The notes beneath the pieces are model-generated. The model worked only from the letters and a program-made list of their open reading frames with translations, ran no database searches and was not told where the DNA came from. Of a DNA stretch of 64,000 nucleotides, positions 1 to 11,600 are shown piece after piece. How positions within the stretch are numbered: position 1 is the stretch's first letter; each line of letters starts with the position of its first letter. A program made the position numbers and the translations under genes. The stretch is from Utricularia gibba (taxonomy: Eukaryota > Plantae > Magnoliophyta), in NCBI GenBank assembly GCA_002189035.1, contig NEEC01000002.1, forward strand, positions 4,278,001-4,342,000, read 5' to 3'.

Positions 1-573
1 AAAAACAATAGTTTACAATTAGGGATTTCATGGGGCAAAAAAGTTTAATACTTTTGGATTATTATAATTTAAATACAAAAACAAGTGACTTATGTATATA
101 AACCTACTACATGAAAAAAAACACTAAATATATATATTTTTTCTGTCTAAAATAGAATCAATTTCTTCTACTTCATTTGATATCGTCACACCCTTTTCTT
201 CTTCCAACACTCAGCAATCCATGTAAAATTCCCCGGCAACACTCCTTGAATCATGCATGGTGTGCTTTTTAAAGATCATGGCATCCATCATCCGATGTTT
301 CATCCTGATTTCTTCAAATGAATATTTCCAGAAGCTTTGCTACGCAATCTTACTAGCTGCTTTTCTGATTCAATATGTGGACTGAAAAGGAACAATAACA
401 CATAAAATCAAGAAATCACAGGTTTAGTAATTCAATATCCTAAGGGCGCATTTGGTTGTTGGGTTTAGATGGGTAGCAGCGTGGGTTTAGACATAAACCC
501 ACGTTTGGTACGTGGGTTTCAGGTGGGTAAAAATAAACCCACCTGTTGACCATAAACCGGGCGGGAACCCTTG

Positions 574-629
574 GAGCTGGGTTTAGCTAAACCCGGGGGG
601 GGGGGGGTCGGTTTAGCTAAACCCAGCTC
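574..629. repeat. Perfect 20-bp inverted repeat around a G13 tract, in the Harbinger left subterminal region
   Basis: GAGCTGGGTTTAGCTAAACC (574-593) and GGTTTAGCTAAACCCAGCTC (610-629) are exact reverse complements; G run at 595-607. Confidence 0.9.
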
Positions 630-916
630 GGCACTTCCACTTTTGCCCTTGTGTGAACTTCATTTGAATGCAGATCTACGACCCAAATTTGTTCGTGGTT
701 TACCGGTGGCGTCGCTTGTTCTTTGAGCGCAAGAGGGTGGGTCTTTCGATAAGTATGCTTTTCTGTTCTTGGTGGGTTGGTCCACGGTAGCACCACGAGA
801 GGCCAACCACGGCAGCACCACATAGTGGATTTTTATTTGTGATTTTCCAATTTCAAAATCTGTGGTGCTGTGTCAGTGAACTTATTTTGCTCGATTTTGA
901 TGACTGTTGAGGGGAC

Positions 917-2229
917 ATGGATTTTTTCACAGAGGGTCATGCCATCTTGAGTGCGACAGCAGGAGCTTTGACTGAATACTTGGTGCAGATGAATGTGTTA
1001 GTATACTTACATTGGAAGAAATACCGTAGGGGATATAGGGTGCGACGCAAGTATTCACTTACACAAAAGATTTCTAGACAAGTTGAGTTTATTAGTAGGT
1101 TGGTGAGTGATGTGAATAGCGCATCCATTGAGAATTTGAGAATCAGCCAAGATGCATTGGGTATTTTATGTAGCCTATTAAAAAATCATTCTAACTTAAA
1201 GGCTGGAAAATATGTAACGGTTCCGGAGATGGTTTGCATTTTTTTAGGAATATTAGGTCATCATAAAAAATTGCGGTGCAGAAGCATGTCTACGGGAGGA
1301 GCACCGAGACTGTGTCTAGGTGCTTCCAAAAGGTGTTGCATGCGGTGCTTTGACTCCATGAGGTGCTGTTAGAGACCCCTATAGTTGCTACAGAACGTGC
1401 ATCCGAAGGGAAGTTTAAACACTTCCAGGTAGACACATCTTTCATGCTTTTTTTTACGAATATGTATCCTAAAATTGATTATGCATTTGCAGGGTTGTGT
1501 TGGAGTTAACAAATGTGATGCTACAAGGTACAGAAATCAAAAGGGGTGATATCCACCAACGTGTTGGGTGTATGTGATGAACACATGAAATTTATATATG
1601 TGCTTGCTGGGTGGGAGGGGTCTGCTGCAGATAGTCGGGTGCTAAACGATGCATTCTCACGATTCGACGGCTTCCGTGTACGCCCAGGTATTTCACTTGT
1701 TTAGCCCTTTCGCATGTGATTCCAATGATTTTATGCACCATGTATACATGATGACACATGAACATATTACCTATGTGACAATGGATATGCTAATAGGAAG
1801 AGCTTTTTGGCACCATATCGTGGGGTCTGTTACCACTTGAAGAAGTAAGGACAAGGAAATGGAGCACCCCAGAATGCGAAGGAGCTATTCAACATGGGGC
1901 ATGCATCAGCCAAAAATGTGATTGAACGAGCTTGGGGCTTGATGAAGATGCGGTGGGGTATACTACGGACGGCTAGCTACTATTCCGTAGACACACAGAA
2001 CCGCATTGTATTAGCATGTGCTTTACTGCATAACCTCATTCGAAAGGAGATGGTGGTCGATCCCTTGGAGGATCAGGTCCCATTGGACTTCCAGGATGAA
2101 GCTGGGGATACGAGTGATCCAGAAGACGTCACGACATCTGCTGGAGGCAATCAAGCATGGAATAGGTGGCGTGACCAGCAAGCCGAGGGGATGTACGTCG
2201 AGTGGCTGGCATCCCACAGACGCCGCTAG
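917..2229 (+). pseudogene. Harbinger/PIF DDE transposase (HARBI1-like), disrupted
   Basis: Motifs RSTETVSRCF, NVLGVCD..MKFIYVLAGWEGSAADSRVL, LCDNGY, FLAPYRG and HASAKNVIERAWGLMKMRWGIL. It has frameshifts, stops and a deletion across the usual GALDGTH segment. Introns lie near 1430-1490 and after ~1688. Confidence 0.88.
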
Positions 2230-3228
2230 TGTAGCACTGTATTAGTAATTGTCGTGCTAGTGGTTTTCCTGAATTCTCGTTCAGAACCTATCGTGTCATT
2301 TGTACTGTATTGCTAAGCACAACTCTGTGCATTGCAAAGTCATGTCCTAAATTCCCGTTTGTACTCCAACCTTGAACTTGAAATTGCCGAGTATTTGGTA
2401 GTTGCTGCACAAATTGTTGGGATTGTACCATAGTGTCATGTCTTACCATGGGGTAACATGGCAAGACATGGTGGATCATTGAAGCCAACACCGTGATCTT
2501 TAGTTGAGGTGCTACAGAGGCTTGTAGGACACCAAAGTTGTTGGCAGCACCACGTGTTTCATCGTATCCGATGCTGACAAAAATTAGATATTAGATGAGT
2601 GGGAAGCTGGTGCATAGTAGGAGGGTAGTTGACAGAATAGGAATGCGCCTTTTCACCAAACACCGCGATCCGTAAACTCCGGTGCTTCGAAACGCCTAGG
2701 CTATGCCCGTTTAGTGCTGCACCGCATGCTTCCTCGTATCCGGTGCTGTCAAGATTTAGAAGTACATGCGTATGCAGTTGGTGCATATTAACGTGGGTGA
2801 TTGGTAGTACAATAATACTCCTTTTGACCAAACCCGCGAAAACATAATCCGGTGTTTATAAACACCTGAGCTACGCTACGCATTCCGCAGCACCACGAAA
2901 TGCATATTCGGTGTTCTGAGTTCCATAAACAAATTGGCAAAAAATATTGCAGTTATCCAGCATTAAATGAGAAGGGCGGTTGACAACCGCCCAGCGCTAT
3001 TAATACCCCCTGATAAAGGCACCTGACATTCTGCACTTTCCAAAATAACTTCATTAATTCCGCTCATCCAACTCCACCCTTTCGGTAAACGTGCAGCAGC
3101 ACCACGAAAATCGACTCCTCGACAAATTCTCAAGAACAGCATCGTGACGATGGGAACCTTTGCCATCAGCACCAAGTGTTTCAAATTCTTCGTTGCCATC
3201 GTTGACTAACACACATATTGTTTTCTAG

Positions 3229-3718
3229 ATGTTGATGTGTGAGAAACTATGTATCCGCTTCTCAATTCCCGACGGTTACACGATATGGGATAAACAACCG
3301 GGCGAAATGTCGGACGGCGAACCGCCATCTAGAGTTGGAGCATCGGGATTCGCCATCAGCACCGAGCACTTTTGGTGTGGATTGCGACTCCCCCCGCCCC
3401 TTTCATGGTGCAGATACTTGCTGTACTCCGGATCCCATTCTCCCACCTCACACCATGTTCTGTGGCGCACATTCTCGCATTTCTGCAGGTCTGTGAAGAA
3501 GAGGACATACCCCGGAAATACATGTCTTCTTTGCGGTTTCTGTTTGTGTCCAACGTAAGGGGAGTCCGCACTACTCGCTTCATGGAAAACCTGGTGTGGT
3601 TCTGGTGACAGACATGAGAAGTGCATATGATGATTGGTGGCACAGTTTTATATGGGTATGCCCACCCACCGCTGCAGAATGGCCAACTACGTTGACAGTG
3701 TTAGAGAATGTGGGACAC
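3229..3718 (+). pseudogene. Transposase_28-like (PF04195-type, Gypsy extra-ORF) domain exon; 5' part of the Harbinger cargo gene
   Basis: Across two frameshifts it reads HFWCGLRLP/PFMVQILAVLRIPFSHLTPCSVAHILAFLQVCEE/HYSLHGKPGVVLVTDMRSAYDDWWHSFIWV, resembling the GLRLP..HLTPNS..F..LCE family pattern. A solo LTR interrupts it at 3719. Confidence 0.7.
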
Positions 3719-5064
3719 TGATGCGTGTCGTTTCCACAACAAGTTTTAATACTTTTAAAACTCATAAAACACAAAAGCGTAGTACGGGTGTCGAACACAG
3801 GGAGTTGTTTTTGAGTGAAAGGTGAGTCACCCCGAATACAACTATCACGATTTGTAAACGGTTTTGAAGGTAAAAGGTGCGAGAAACATTGATGATGAAG
3901 CTTGAGTAAGGGAATGAGAGGGGTTTTGAGCAAACAACTAAAATGAACGTAAGAGATGAACCTTAAATAAAGTAAATGTTCCTGGGTTTCGAATCCTGTC
4001 CAGCAATGTTCGTTGCGTCTTCAGTCTTCTCTGGTCCTCTCAAGTACTCAGTTATAGGAGTAAGGAATTGCCTACCCTCCCTTACACTCTCTTGCAAGAA
4101 GGCACGGGAATAGCCCGATGTTGCTCCTCCTTGGACGAATGTGAGAATAAGAGGTTCTGCCAGCGTACCCTCACGGCCGAATTGCCGTGTGTGCCCGAGT
4201 GTTGCCAATGACCCAATGAGTCCAGATACGAGGTCACTACCTATCCATTGATCCTGAGGTACGGCCACAGACAAAACGTTGTCTTCCTCCTGCCAAAAGG
4301 GCTCAAGTTGGTGCTTTCCACCTTGCTCCTCTCCAAAATCCGCGGGTAGTGATCAGCTAACCATGAACGTTGAACAAGGGGACTGTTACAGAAAGACTGC
4401 AACATAGTCGCGCGAAGACATACGAAACCCATTCGGATTCAGAGAAAATGTGAAGATAAGCTAATGAAACATAGATCTGGTGGTGTTCCAACCCAGAAAC
4501 GGGAGTTTCTAGCCGCGAACGGCCATACAAACTAAAGAAAACGAAACAAGGTTCTAGAGAGAAGCTAGAGGAAAAATCCTATAGAGAGAGAAACAAAAGG
4601 GAAAACTAAACTGAAAGTAAACTAAACTTGTCTGAACAGAACTGAACTTCATTGAGAGTCTGAGATTTCGTGTCCCTATGATTTTGCTGAACTTGAGATG
4701 ACTTGCAAGCAACGTCTGACACTGGTACGCTAATGATGCCGCCTGTCAGAGACTCCCGTGTTCCGCACATCAAGGCTCATGATTAGGTGTCTGCAGTCTT
4801 CCGGGAATCAAGGGAATGTCAGCTCGGGAAGATTCAATTTGTCGCCATCTGATGCCCTCTTTCTCTCATTTCTTGCCACGTGTGCGCCTCTAGAAAAACT
4901 CAATTAAAACTAGTAAAGTTAATAGATAAAATGCAAGATTTAGGATAATTACCCTAAACTAGATAAAAACCTAAATATCATATTATAGACTCCTAATTAG
5001 ACACTTCTAATCACATTTAAACATAAAAACAACCTAAGAAATAATAAGAAAATGACACTTAACA
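3719..5064 (-). mobile_element. Solo LTR, Athila-like family A, nested in the Harbinger cargo gene
   Basis: TG...CA ends and 5-bp TSD GACAC (3714-3718, 5065-5069). Homologous to the PBS-linked LTR at 25558-26865. Confidence 0.9.
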
Positions 5065-5447
5065 GACACCTATCAGGTAACCACACAAAATAATTTTGGT
5101 GTTGCACACGTCTTGTGCAACATTACTCATGTTTGTTGCTGTTTTCGTTGTAGGCATAGAGGTGTTGCCAAAACGTGCGGCAATGAGGTTTGTGAATTTG
5201 TTCTCTTGCAGAACAAAGTCCTTGGAGGATGTCTTGCCCCCTTCGTCAATGCCCCTAGGACACACCATCTGTGGTGCGGAACCCCTCGACATCGTCGACA
5301 ACGTACGAGTACAAATGATGATCTGAGGAGGTGACCCATGAAGAGGAAGAAGATGTGCAGCCAGAAGTCAGGGGCAACACGAACGGGCCAACATCGATCT
5401 AGACACACGACGACGGGTGCGGTGCTGCCACTGCAAAATATATCGAA

Positions 5448-6399
5448 GTGGAGAGACTGTACGCAGAGAATCTTGATCTCTGTGGTTGGCTTGCATGGTA
5501 TGAAGCAAGGTGGCCATATGGTGGACTGTCTAGTGATAACACGGCCCCACCACGGAAATTGCTAATATTTGATGTGAATGGTGTACTTGCGGACATTGTG
5601 TATCCTCGTGAAGTCAGATGGGGGGCACTGAAGCCGGATGCCGTCATTTACGGGCGAAACGGTAATGCTGTGTCATCGATATGCATTTAATATTTGGTGC
5701 GTCTGTCAGTACTATTTCTTGTGCTTGAAGTGTATCTTCGATGAGGTGCACGTGAGTTGATACAGTTTTGCATGGAACACTTTGACGTTGCCATCTGGTC
5801 TTCAAGAGAACGATAAGACTGACCACCTTGTAGGCAAGGGGGTCCGCATTCCTGCTAACATCTGATTTTTCTGACCACATGTGGCAGAGAACAATTGCAC
5901 GATGTGGTTCAGTGGTTACTAGAGCCTGCAGCAGCCAGCAAGCTTGTCTTCCAATGAGATGGATCAAGGTGTGTGGACACAATCTATCTGGTGCACAACA
6001 ACAGGAACAACACGGTTAAGCTTAAGCTTTTGAATCATATATGGGGCACCAACACCGAGTTCAAGGGCAAATATCACCGTCTTAATACGCTTCTCATCAA
6101 TGATGCGCTGTACAAGTCACTGCACAATCCGGTGAGTTTTCGGTAGTGCTCTTCTCCACCGTCTTGCATCCGATGATGTTTACTTTCATTGAAAGCCCAA
6201 AAATGCCATATTCCCAACCACATGCAAGTACACCGCGGTGAATGATTGTTCACTGGTTCGAGAGGGAGATATTAGGTCGTTCCTGGAAGCCCTCATTGAC
6301 AACATGGATGTACCCACGCACGTCAATCGCCAACGGGTAGGTCAACGTCCAATAGACGAGGAACACCCATTGTGGAAGCATTACAAGACTCTTGTCTAA
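5448..6399 (+). pseudogene. FCP1/NIF-homology HAD phosphatase-like domain, multi-exon; 3' part of the Harbinger cargo gene
   Basis: RKLLIFDVNGVLADIVY, FCMEHFDVAIWSSR, KYHRLNTLLINDALYKSLHNP, NAIFP..GDIRSFLE..GQRPI..W.HY occur in the order seen in plant FCP1-homology proteins. Two in-frame TGA codons and one donor reading ATAAG instead of GTAAG. Confidence 0.85.
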
Positions 6400-6885
6400 T
6401 TGATGGCTCACCTTTGCAATTGCATGGATCTTGCGTGAACTATCGTATGCTGACCTTGTTAGTTTTTAATCGATCACTGATCGCAGTGGCACCGCATGTT
6501 GTAAGATCCGGTGCCATCACTGGATTTGAAACCTTGTGTCTAGATGTGGTGCTTCATAATATGCAACACCAATGCGGTGCTAGTCCATCACTACTCGATA
6601 GCACCGCTCTGAATGCGGCGGTAGTTGCAGTACCGTGTTTGCGGAAGAGTGCTCAACAACGAAGCACCGCGATTGTTCTTACGCGGTGCTTCCACGTACA
6701 AAGTCAGAACAATGTCTACCCTTTGCAGTGCTCATATCAGTTTAAAGGATGATTAGAAGATGAAATACATCTAGTCCATGAGTCCAACATAAGGCGGAAC
6801 AGCACACAACAGATTTAAGATCTACATTCGGATACTAAACCAGCACAATAAGCTCTCGCTCACAGTCGCTAGAGGCAAGGAAATA

Positions 6886-7760
6886 TCACAACCTCGCAGG
6901 GTTGGAACTAATCTTCTCTGTTATGGTAAAATGTTCGATGACAGTTAATTGCACCGGCATACCTCTAATGATCTCCCCTGCCTGACGCTGATTATCCACC
7001 AACTCCCGCGCTTGCTGCATCACTGTTAATCCCACGTGACGTAGCTCTTCGCATGTGCGCACGTTAAGCTCCTTCATTTCTGTGATAAACTGCACATCAT
7101 CATCGATTCCCCTCGGTCCCCTGCCGCTTCGTCTAGAGCGCCGCGACGAGTTGGTGCTGCTGTGTGATTCGGAGTCCCTACTAAGCGTGATGTTGACACC
7201 CTCCGCGGCACAACCAATTGGGTCACAAGGTGTGTCAGCATATGAGAATTTCATATCATGTCCAGTGCTATCCGGGTCCCGAGGGCAATCCGAAGATACT
7301 TCCAGATTCTCCCCCACATCTTCCATGAATTTCCTCTTCTTGGTCGCGGCTACATAGCTCATCGTTTTTTCTCCTGTAGCCCAATCCTTTCCAAAGATTT
7401 CCTGCCACTCGATGTAATACAGCCACACCTTGTGTCTTAGGGCGCGCAGTCTAGGTCATGGTGACATAGTAACACGGTCAGCACTGGATATAACATAGCG
7501 AAAACAGGGCATACTTACCTGATCAATCTCCTTCCAAACCTCATCATCTGCGTCTATGGTGTAGGTCAGCTCACTGAAACCGGTGCCTGACCGTGATAAA
7601 AAATCTACAAGGAGGTAGTAGTCTTTTTTCCAAGTGTGCACCTTGCTAGATATATGGGGGTGTGCGCGGATGTCGGTTCCAGGTCGGAGTTCTAGCACTG
7701 CGACAACGGACTGTGAAAGTCGGTGGACGAAGGGGGTAATGTTTATAAAGAGGAACATGT
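6886..7760 (-). pseudogene. Harbinger Myb/SANT-like DNA-binding protein, probably 5'-truncated
   Basis: HPHISSKVHTWKKDY..SGTGF..DDEVW, an intron (GTAAGT donor near 7518), then EWQEIFGKDWATG, as in plant Harbinger Myb/SANT proteins. Confidence 0.8.
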
Positions 7761-8633
7761 CTGAATGGGTAAAGTGGGTGTGAAAGTCGGTGTACGAGTG
7801 TGAAAGTCTATATTGGTAAATTCCCATAAAAATTATGTATAAACCCAATTTTATACCCACCTACCAAACGTGGGTTTATTTAAACTCAAATAATGTAAAC
7901 ACATCAACCAAACATGATTCACAGAGACTAAACCCATAAAACTGGGTTCCCTAAACCCAAATAAAATAAACTTGGGTTTAGGCCAAACTCAGCAACCAAA
8001 CGTGCCCTAAAGGTATTCATGTGATCAACTATACTCAATATTTAAGTAGTTTATTATAAAAAAAGAGACCCTCTTTTATAGAATAGAGTCAATTGGATAA
8101 GGTGCAATTGATTTCATAATTTTAGGAAACTTGATCAAGTACACCATTACCTAGTCTTATGCAAAACTAGGAATTCAGTTACAACCATCAAAGGCTAAGC
8201 CAAGTCTTTGATTTAGTAGTTCTCTTAATTTCCTATTCCAATAATTAGATTATTGTAATTATTACAACACAACATGAATCATATGATCTCTTTGTTCTTG
8301 ATAAATTCTTTGAATGCATGAAATTTTATTTTGATATGTAATAGATTATTCTTTTTATTGAAATAGCTGTATTATTATCAATTAATGATTTGATTACATC
8401 CTTTCGTCAAAAACCCAATCCTCAAGAACCTATCTCAACCAGATATAGAACTTAGTTGCTCATGCAATTGATATGTATTCGACATTCAAAATAGATTGGG
8501 CAATCACCAATTGTTAAGTTAAATGTACTATGTGATGTGCTTTTAGCATCTTGCTTGAATAGCATTTCAATTTTACTTCCTTGATATCAATTGAATGAGG
8601 GTAATAGAATTCAAAATTTGTTGTTCTCTTTAT

Positions 8634-11600
8634 TGTTGGGTTTCTCGTAGACATCGTATGTCTCAAAAGCAGTGGAATTTTAAAATTTTGAGAAACTCCC
8701 AACGCAGATCTTGGAATACGGTATACATCAGACTAAGGGATGCTAAAATACCTTTTAGATGACTCCGTTGTTCACCAACCGCCAATAGGAGACGGCCTCT
8801 ATGATATCCACACGTGGAGCACTCCGTCGATAACCTTCTCAAGGCTCTTGAATGCTGGTCGAATTCCTCAGGTGCTAGTAGAGAAAAACGCTCCCTTGTG
8901 GATTAATAGAGCATGAAGACCCTTGGAGCAGATCTCAAGATCTAAATCTTTTTGATAGATATATGGTAACATATCAAATCATATCTCCGTAAAGATCTTA
9001 TCTTATGGAGATATGTATATGTTCCAAATCTTATCTATATATGATCTTTTATTTTGAGTTTAATCAATATTAATCTCAAAATAACTTTCAATTTAATTTA
9101 TCCACTTTACCAATTACATTTCATGTAATTGTTTCATTCTATTTTATATCGTTGAGTGACTCCACTATTGTGTGCGACCCTATAGGCTTCTTCAATCAAG
9201 GCCGTAATAATGGATTTATTAATTAACTCTTAATTAATCAAATCCATCATTATCGATCATGAGTGATGTCTAGCAATCTATCATGATCCCCAAGATGTAA
9301 GAATAATCAGGTGAACTGATTGAGCCTTTCCATGACCAGCCACCATGCAATGAACAGCTTTCATCATACTTATATCTCATTCGATACTTCAAGTCGTCAT
9401 GATCAGACTGGAAACTTGCATCAGCATATCCTTCCACTTGGAAACCTTTACCACCGTATATCAAGAACATGTCTTTAGTCCTTCTCAAGTACTTAAGAAT
9501 GCTCTTGATTGCGGTCCAATGATCCATTCCAGGGTTCGACTGATATCTGCTTGTAACACTTAAAGCATATGACACATCTGGTCTAGTACACAGCATGGCG
9601 TACATTATCGACCCAATAGAAGAAGCATATGAGATTCGAGCCATCTGATCCCTTTCTTCTTCTGTCTTGGGGCACATCACTTTTGAAAGTGCCTTATGTG
9701 TCATGGGCGTTAAACCTCTCTTGGAATCAGCCATGTTAAACCTCTTTAACACTTTATCGATGTAGGTCGATTGTGATAGTCCAATCAGTCTCTTTGAGCT
9801 ATCTCTATAGATCTTTATGCCCAATATATAAGCCGCATCTCCAAGATCTTTCATTGAAAAGCTCTTGGATAACCAAATTTTTACTGATTGCATTGTTGCA
9901 ACATCATTTCCCATTACTAATATGTCATCCACATACAGTATGAGAAATACGATTGCCAAGCCATCTACCTTCTTGTATACACAAGGTTCATCTTCATTTT
10001 GAGAGAAACCAAACTCTTTGATTATCTCATCAAATTTGTTCCAACTTCTTGAAGCTTGCTTTAGCCCATAGATGGATTTGTTCAGTTTACACACTTTACT
10101 AGGATCTTGTGTGAAACCTTCAGGTTGTGTCATGTACACTTCCTCAGCCAAATTTCCATTTAGGAAGGCTGTTTTCACATCCATCTGTCATATCTCATAA
10201 TCAACACCTTGTTTTTTATGATACCCTTTTGCCACAAGTCGTGCCTTATAGGTAGATATATTTCCATCCATGTCAGTTTTCCTTTTGAATACCCATTTGC
10301 ATCCAATAGGATTTACTCCTCTGGAGCATTGACCAATGTCCAAACATTGTTCTCATACATGGAATCCATTTCTGCCCTCATGGCAACAAGCCATTTACTT
10401 GACTCAGCACTATTGATTGCTTCGTCATAAGTCCGAGGTTCCTCATCTAATATGAGGTCTCCCATGCCTTCGGCATCAACAATGAAACCGTATCTCACAA
10501 TAGGGTTACGTTGTTGGACTGATCTTCTGGCAGAAAACGTGCTTGGTACATTTGGCAAGTCAGATTGCTCAGGTTGATTGCTCACTGGTACATTACCAGC
10601 TTCTGGGACACAATTTCGAGATGGTGAGCCTAGATTACCTTTTGAGTCACCCACTAGCATCTCTATAGGTGTCACTGGCTCGTTCTCAAACATCTCCTCA
10701 AGTTCAAAACGACTCCATTTGCTTCTTTGAGGAGAAACTCTTTCTCCAAAAAGACAACATTCCTCGAGATGAAAACCTTTCCCTCTTGAAGATTATAGAA
10801 GTAGTATCCCATGGTTTCTTGTGGATATCCCAGAAAGAGACACTTGTCAGATTTGTTCTCCAACTTATCTGACTTCAACCTTCTTACATAAGTAGGGCAT
10901 CCCCAAGCTTTGAGGTAGGAGAAACTCGGTTTTCTACCAGTCCAAATCTCATAAGGAGTGGTATCAACCAATTTCGATGGGGCTTTGTTCAAAACATGAG
11001 CCGCTACCTCTAAAGCATATCCCCACATGGACTTTGGTAGTTCTGCAAAACTCATCATGGATCGAACCATGTCAAGCAAAGTTCGATTTCTCCTCTCAGA
11101 AACACCATTGTGCTCAGATGTATCAGGAGGAGTTCTTTATGAGACAATACCATTGTCCTTCAGATGATTCTTGAATTCATTACTCAAGTATTCCCCACCA
11201 CGATCTGATCAAAGTTTCTTGATGGAACGCTCAAGCTGGTTCTCGACCTCCATCCGAAACTCTTTGAACTTTTCAAAGGCTTCAAATTTTCGTTTCATCA
11301 AGTAGATGCGTCCATATCTTGAATGGTCATCTGTAAAAGTGATGAAATACGAGAAACCCCTCTAGCAGTGATGCTCATTGGACCATATACATCAGAATGT
11401 ATTAAATCCAATAAGTTTTCAGCTCTTGCTCCTTTTCCTAGAAAAGGTTGCTTTGTCATTTTTCCCAATAAACAAGATTCACATGTTTCATAAGATTCAA
11501 AATCTTCTGAGTCCAAATATCCCAATCGATATAAGTACTCAACACGCTTCTTGTTTATATGGCCTAAACGACAATGCCAGAGGTAAGAATTCAAGATGTT

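Follow-up and report, generated by a model that had tools for sequence, protein, structure and literature searches.

Plant PIF/Harbinger elements are textbook two-gene transposons, and in a survey of 380 PHIS families two open reading frames (ORFs) per element were indeed reported (PMC4482050). Transposase_28 (TRP28, PF04195) is a domain of unknown function from one Ty3/Gypsy lineage, being found as an antisense ORF of Retand elements; it is restricted to flowering-plant transposable elements, has no similarity outside transposons and is predicted to bind DNA (PMC11963269). Both the two-protein organization of Harbingers and the occurrence of Transposase_28 as an extra ORF in Gypsy elements had been stated in a preliminary description of the DNA under study, and these reports agree with it (PMC4482050, PMC11963269). 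We have carried out an analysis of 64,000 nucleotides of Utricularia gibba DNA (contig NEEC01000002.1, positions 4,278,001–4,342,000 of the forward strand; hereafter the window, in which all positions below are counted) and observed that it contains a PIF/Harbinger element (444–8008, plus strand) with a third gene at 3229–6399, flanked by a broken gene for a DDE transposase on one side and by a Myb-like gene on the other. We consider it likely that the element represents, in decayed form, a Harbinger of three genes, the third of which would have encoded an accessory protein combining a TRP28 domain with an FCP1-like, probably non-catalytic, part. In the literature searched, on Harbinger together with FCP1, NIF or C-terminal domain (CTD) phosphatases and on Transposase_28 together with phosphatases, the fusion is not described, which is in line with the earlier statement that no such description was known. 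The gene layout itself is real.

A five-exon third gene and its second copy

The third gene comprises five exons and lies on the plus strand, in the orientation of the transposase gene; its place between the two core Harbinger genes is as had been proposed. Exon 1 contains the start codon and the Transposase_28 domain (3229–3718), and its last 7 nt (5070–5076) are found beyond an inserted solo long terminal repeat (LTR). Removal of the LTR and of one duplication restores the reading ..ENVGHLS-G, and the splice sites of intron 1, a GT donor (5077) and an AG acceptor (5152–5153), agree in being phase 1, so that these two points of the preliminary description are confirmed in the sequence. Intron 1 (5077–5153, GT..AG, phase 1) is followed by exon 2 (5154–5661), which comprises the linker, the conserved motif NLDLCGWLAWYEARW and motif I of the HAD superfamily, LLIFDVNGVL (5559–5588). 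Intron 2 (5662–5730, GT..AG) leads to exon 3 (5731–5812), containing GARELIQFCMEHFDVAIWSS; intron 3 (5813–5887) reads AT..AG in this copy, its donor being mutated at 5813, and precedes exon 4 (5888–6131), which includes NTLLINDALYK at the position of HAD motif IV. Finally, intron 4 (6132–6195, GT..AG, phase 0) is followed by exon 5 (6196–6399), ending at the TAA at 6397–6399. The four introns are short (64–77 nt), and across them a single frame is maintained between 5322 and the TAA at 6397, along which in-frame stops are found at 5400, 5742 and 5955: the fact that all four preserve the frame is strong evidence that the gene was once truly spliced.

The family of the gene was analyzed using contigs from the reads of another DNA run (X2) of the same organism. 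In the early linker, eight such family contigs, amounting to about one third of the depth, have an extra C in the C-run after position 5236, which would shift this region to another open frame rich in basic residues (RHRRQR, KRKK). Given this extra C, the ancestral early linker may have used either of two frames.

A second copy of the fusion gene, truncated and decayed, is located on the minus strand at 35175–36387 (hereafter copy 2, the gene within the Harbinger being copy 1), as inferred from tblastn, the PF04195 profile and frame reading. Using tblastn it is recovered as five colinear matches (E 1e-12 to 1e-3, minus strand 36387–35175). It starts with an intact Transposase_28 ORF of 123 residues (36387–36019), continues with an AT-rich intron, the linker motif and LIILDVNGMF, and then ends. 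The two copies share about 45% protein identity, three frame pieces of copy 1 tiling on the copy-2 ORF at 48, 39 and 45% identity from a shared methionine, and blastn detects no DNA similarity between them. The intron of copy 2 is no more than a few codons away from the place that intron 1 has in copy 1, indels preventing a comparison of phase, and after it copy 2 has NEELCYKLDLYESCWAY followed by LIILDVNGMF, versus NLDLCGWLAWYEARWPY followed by LLIFDVNGVL in copy 1. This intron (approximately 35375–35900) is filled with AT-rich short tandem repeats, and copy 2 as a whole is bracketed by direct repeats at 34845–35131 and 36951–37188 (118 nt at 81% and 82 nt at 73% identity, about 2.1 kb apart), with no obvious inverted ends.

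Since the diverged copy 2 keeps the start, the domain order, nearly the same intron place, the linker motif and the DVNG sequence, the fusion is one old gene, and a chance juxtaposition of the two domains is excluded by this shared architecture. Together with the four frame-keeping introns, copy 2 thus sustains the earlier proposal that both domains belonged to one spliced gene. It is hardly credible that two unrelated fragments, a Retand-derived Transposase_28 and a piece of a host NIF gene, came to lie side by side here without ever forming one gene. Such a juxtaposition would fit a linker that in copy 1 contains a stop and can be read through only with a change of frame, and the lack of transcript evidence, but it leaves unexplained why a copy without DNA similarity by blastn has the order, near-identical intron place, linker motif and DVNG again, and why intron 1 is phase-matched.

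The comparison of the two copies is also informative in respect to selection. At codon positions 1, 2 and 3 their identity amounts to 57, 66 and 34% (212 aligned codons), and the proportion of nonsynonymous differences (pN) is 0.385 versus a saturated 0.79 for synonymous ones (pS, 195 codons), with the caveat that the codon alignment was chosen at the protein level. Such a pattern is what purifying selection leaves when it has long acted on a single protein, here one in which both parts were already present. Moreover, as synonymous sites are saturated, copy 2 is not a recent rearranged derivative of copy 1.

Assignment of the N-terminal part to Transposase_28, as made in the preliminary description, is supported by the profile match of copy 2, with which copy 1 can be aligned along the full domain. 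In copy 1 the PF04195 profile matches the piece 3333–3605 with 25.4 bits (E 1.7e-5, profile positions 11–50 of 69), 0.8 bit under the Pfam cut-off of 26.2; this score falls short because frameshifts cut the domain, whose remainder is found in two other frames. In copy 2 the match is above the cut-off and covers profile positions 2–67 (32.4 bits, E 1.1e-7), and in the ESM Atlas the same ORF scores 0.96 with clusters of Transposase_28. An AlphaFold2 prediction for this ORF, from an alignment of 4 rows, was unusable (mean predicted local distance difference test score, pLDDT, of 44.5). A nested Retand fragment as the source of the domain is rejected: retrotransposon flanks are absent, and copy 2 has in common with copy 1 both the start codon and the 40 N-terminal residues.

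The phosphatase-like C-terminal part

We have analyzed the C-terminal part using exon-sized stop-free pieces, each comprising at most about 48 domain residues. None of these has a significant match to NIF in Pfam, NCBIfam or, using phmmer, the PDB. Thus, the FCP1-like assignment proposed earlier is only indicated: a hidden Markov model match to PF03031 is not obtained on the pieces, whereas the best named Atlas neighbours are NIF clusters and weak alignments are found at HAD motif I. For the segment 5403–5687 the three best named neighbours in the ESM Atlas are NIF (PF03031) clusters and the ten best all share the clan, the scores of 0.85–0.88 being leads only, below the 0.9 level. The neighbours of the last exon are unrelated glycosyltransferases. 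Further, a profile made from the two copies retrieves seven PDB sequences at E ≤ 10, and in five of them, all HAD phosphatases, the alignment falls on the nucleophile motif; the HAD matches include a HAD hydrolase, T4 polynucleotide kinase/phosphatase and KDO8P phosphatase, and the E values of these motif-I alignments (0.5–1.4) are not significant. Within the six-frame translation of the window the HAD motif-I pattern occurs only at copies 1 and 2, the expected number being 0.03.

The spliced translation presents a defined succession of motifs: hhhhDxxG, then RxG..FL....hhhWSS, then a lysine, then hhhNDxxYK..NP..NAhhP. This corresponds to the order in Scp1 and hence in the FCP1/SCP phosphatases. 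On all these indications the C-terminal part likely has a HAD fold and probably belongs to the NIF family. We regard it as rather improbable that it is instead another HAD-like domain, or an unrelated sequence with a DxNG-like motif. A non-NIF identity would agree with the missing significant matches to the pieces in Pfam, NCBIfam and the PDB, with Atlas scores under 0.9 and with the glycosyltransferase neighbours of the last exon; yet the best named Atlas neighbours are NIF and share one clan with the remainder of the ten best, the weak PDB matches are mostly HAD phosphatases aligned at motif I, and the motif order of Scp1 is present in the spliced translation.

In both copies motif I reads D-V-N-G and not DxDx(T/V), the catalytic form in NIF: the nucleophile aspartate is kept and the second, general-acid aspartate is an asparagine. 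Also, motif IV reads ND in copy 1. In Scp1 and other HAD phosphatases, replacing the general-acid aspartate abolishes turnover. Given that this residue is an asparagine here, a binding or trapping role would be likelier than catalysis. That the protein acted as an FCP1-like phosphatase on the CTD of RNA polymerase II is conjectural.

Decay of the gene, its family and its origin

The third gene is in this copy a dead pseudogene, and the transposase gene is likewise broken. At least eight disabling lesions are counted: three frame changes, three in-frame stops, one donor mutation and one LTR insertion. Exon 1 has lost 1 nt in the C-run 3390–3396 and 1 nt at about 3509, and is further split by the LTR; the linker has a frame change near 5322 and a TAG stop at 5400; TGA stops are found in exon 3 (5742) and exon 4 (5955), and the donor of intron 3, mutated at 5813, reads AT. 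The preliminary description had reported one stop and one frameshift in the linker, and these are indeed present, but it undercounted the total damage, having missed the two frameshifts of exon 1, the stops at 5742 and 5955 and the mutated donor. This copy is therefore a wreck and cannot serve as a functional example.

Run X2 places 13–38 contigs per site on the third gene, at 80–99% identity, which indicates that the gene is multi-copy. At 5742 family contigs read C (19 contigs), resulting in CGA instead of a stop, and at 5813 they read G (26 contigs), which restores a GTAAG donor. Some contigs have an extra C after 3396, after 3509 or after 5322, and two have a T after 5323. Since unbroken readings are present in the family at these sites, several lesions are private to this copy. 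Changes of the C>T or G>A type account for 59% of the differences between this copy and the family, in keeping with a repeat that has long been methylated.

A number of observations weigh against the reading of the gene as a working part of its element. The extra C after 3396 and after 3509, which would restore the frame in exon 1, is present in only about one fifth of the contig depth, so that exon 1 may already have been disrupted in much of the family when it spread. No reads on the third gene came from three runs presumed to be RNA, a blank that does not prove silence. The signal of selection seen in comparing the copies might stem from a life outside transposons. To these points must be added the lack of a significant NIF match described above, and the DxNG motif, which argues against normal phosphatase turnover and makes catalysis doubtful. 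Lastly, no public homologue was found, all searches being made with short pieces. HMMER of 5403–5687 against 1.84 billion representatives returned none at E ≤ 0.001, this 95-residue piece being probably too short. A homologous-protein search with 5403–5687, the copy-2 Transposase_28 ORF and the 180-residue Myb-side ORF gave none either, its length window of 0.55–1.75 excluding full-length fusions. A metagenome scan with 5403–5687 resulted in 274 pattern matches, of which 0 were confirmed. Given the short pieces and the length window, these blanks are uninformative.

Several of these points would also be accounted for if the gene had been passive cargo, which we consider a less likely though serious alternative to the accessory gene. 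According to it, a Transposase_28–NIF gene from the host or from another element was captured as DNA, introns included, by a Harbinger ancestor, copy 2 representing an independent capture of a fragment. Pack-MULE-type transduplication provides a model for such an event, and the retained introns speak for it. Copy 2 is truncated, and its surroundings differ, being non-autonomous and delimited by direct repeats; all copies seen are broken, the frameshifts of exon 1 seem common to most family contigs, and reads on the gene are missing from the three presumed RNA runs. In addition, the pN/pS signal fits selection inside a host or inside an element alike. However, the gene is whole from start codon to stop, unlike typical captured fragments, and Transposase_28 has been reported only from transposable elements (PMC11963269).

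The Harbinger element and its comparison with known systems

The element that carries the third gene has the ends of a PIF/Harbinger transposon. A 33-nt inverted repeat (434–466 and 7985–8017) is 79% complementary, a 3-bp TAA target-site duplication of the TWA type flanks both sides (441–443 and 8009–8011), and further subterminal inverted repeats of GGGTTTA type bound the element. The DDE transposase gene (917–2229, plus strand) is broken by at least two frameshifts and by stops at about 1351 and 1846; the DDE_Tnp_4 profile (PF13359) matches 1894–2226 with 28.8 bits (E 1.1e-6), above its cut-off of 24.8, and 1546–1701 with E 6e-4. On the minus strand the Myb/SANT-like gene, probably corresponding to Harbinger ORF1, extends over 6886–7860; its decayed ORF gives a Myb_DNA-bind_3 (PF12776) match on 7459–7860 of 20 bits (E 1.4e-3), short of the 23.6-bit cut-off.

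The interval that separates the transposase stop from the start codon of the third gene contains some four tandem units, which have diverged and measure about 172 bp each (2487–3210, plus strand; direct-repeat families D1–D5 and D9, spacing 170–172), and each unit has one GCACC[AG]C heptamer. Counting both strands, the Harbinger has 17 occurrences of this heptamer outside the LTR, shuffles yielding about 1.1 (at most 5 in 500), and its density in the remaining window is 0.12 per kb. It clusters at 790–862, upstream of the transposase gene, at 2547–3099, upstream of the third gene, and at 6489–6683, from the third gene to the Myb gene. These clusters are candidate protein-binding sites.

The solo LTR that splits the Transposase_28-coding exon 1 (3719–5064, plus strand) comprises 1,346 bp with TG..CA ends, is flanked by a 5-bp GACAC duplication (3714–3718 and 5065–5069) and is devoid of an internal retrotransposon region. 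Relatives are detected in the window by blastn at 25558–26867 and 49108–46997, at 68–88% identity, so that its family has several diverged members there. Run X2 places 50–86 contigs per site on the LTR, those of other LTR copies stopping at 3719 and at 5062/5064. The window as a whole is transposon-rich plant DNA, and just outside the Harbinger, on the minus strand, a 304-residue ORF (9270–10184) presumably represents a Copia-type reverse transcriptase fragment, as read from its translation.

Taking together the data on both copies, the ancestral third gene would have been a single protein-coding gene of five exons, carried by a multi-copy PIF/Harbinger and long under purifying selection. Its product would have had an N-terminal TRP28 domain, a variable charged linker and a complete HAD-fold domain of FCP1/SCP (NIF) layout, and may have been an accessory factor of the element. 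Through its TRP28 domain the protein could have been tethered to DNA or chromatin, and, given the DxNG motif, the HAD part might have bound or trapped a phospho-protein rather than turning it over. Any role in transcription or silencing is speculation. In its most specific form, which we regard as unlikely, this would mean that a Harbinger lineage keeps under selection its own regulator, a TRP28 DNA-binding domain joined to an FCP1-like pseudo-phosphatase, which would bind the phosphorylated CTD of RNA polymerase II or a silencing factor at GCACC[AG]C-rich regions, promoting transcription or countering silencing, and would thus be the Harbinger counterpart of VANC.

With respect to the FCP1/SCP (NIF, PF03031) phosphatases, including plant NIF-like proteins, the C-terminal part is alike in HAD motif order and in its nearest language-model neighbours, but theirs is a DxDx(T/V) motif, whereas here DVNG is found along with ND in motif IV and without a hidden Markov model match on the pieces. 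Accessory genes are known from other plant DNA transposons, such as VANC of VANDAL elements, for which an anti-silencing role has been shown, and the ULP1-like protease of some MULEs. The third gene is similar to these in being an extra gene beside the transposase; it has no sequence relation to them, and an anti-silencing role here is conjecture. With the fusion, the few regulators of plants that are encoded by transposons gain a further candidate.

As a concept, the nearest system is that of the PMD-PP7 modules (MAIL3, and MAIN/MAIL1 with PP7L), which act on gene expression and transposon silencing (PMC7156037). There too a domain of transposon origin works together with one of phosphatase type, either in cis or in trans; however, those are host genes with a PMD domain and a PPP fold, whereas the present gene, of putative function, is borne by a transposon. 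In respect to the Retand TRP28 ORFs the Pfam domain is the same, but in Retand it constitutes a stand-alone antisense ORF, while here it is spliced, located in a DNA transposon and fused to a HAD-like domain, which offers a second context for working out TRP28 function. Finally, the element shares with canonical plant PIF/Harbingers the terminal inverted repeats, the TAA (TWA) duplication, DDE_Tnp_4 and a probable opposite-strand Myb_DNA-bind_3 gene, and differs from their two-gene organization by the complete third gene of five exons placed between the two. The fusion connects two classes of transposon by an accessory domain that they have in common.

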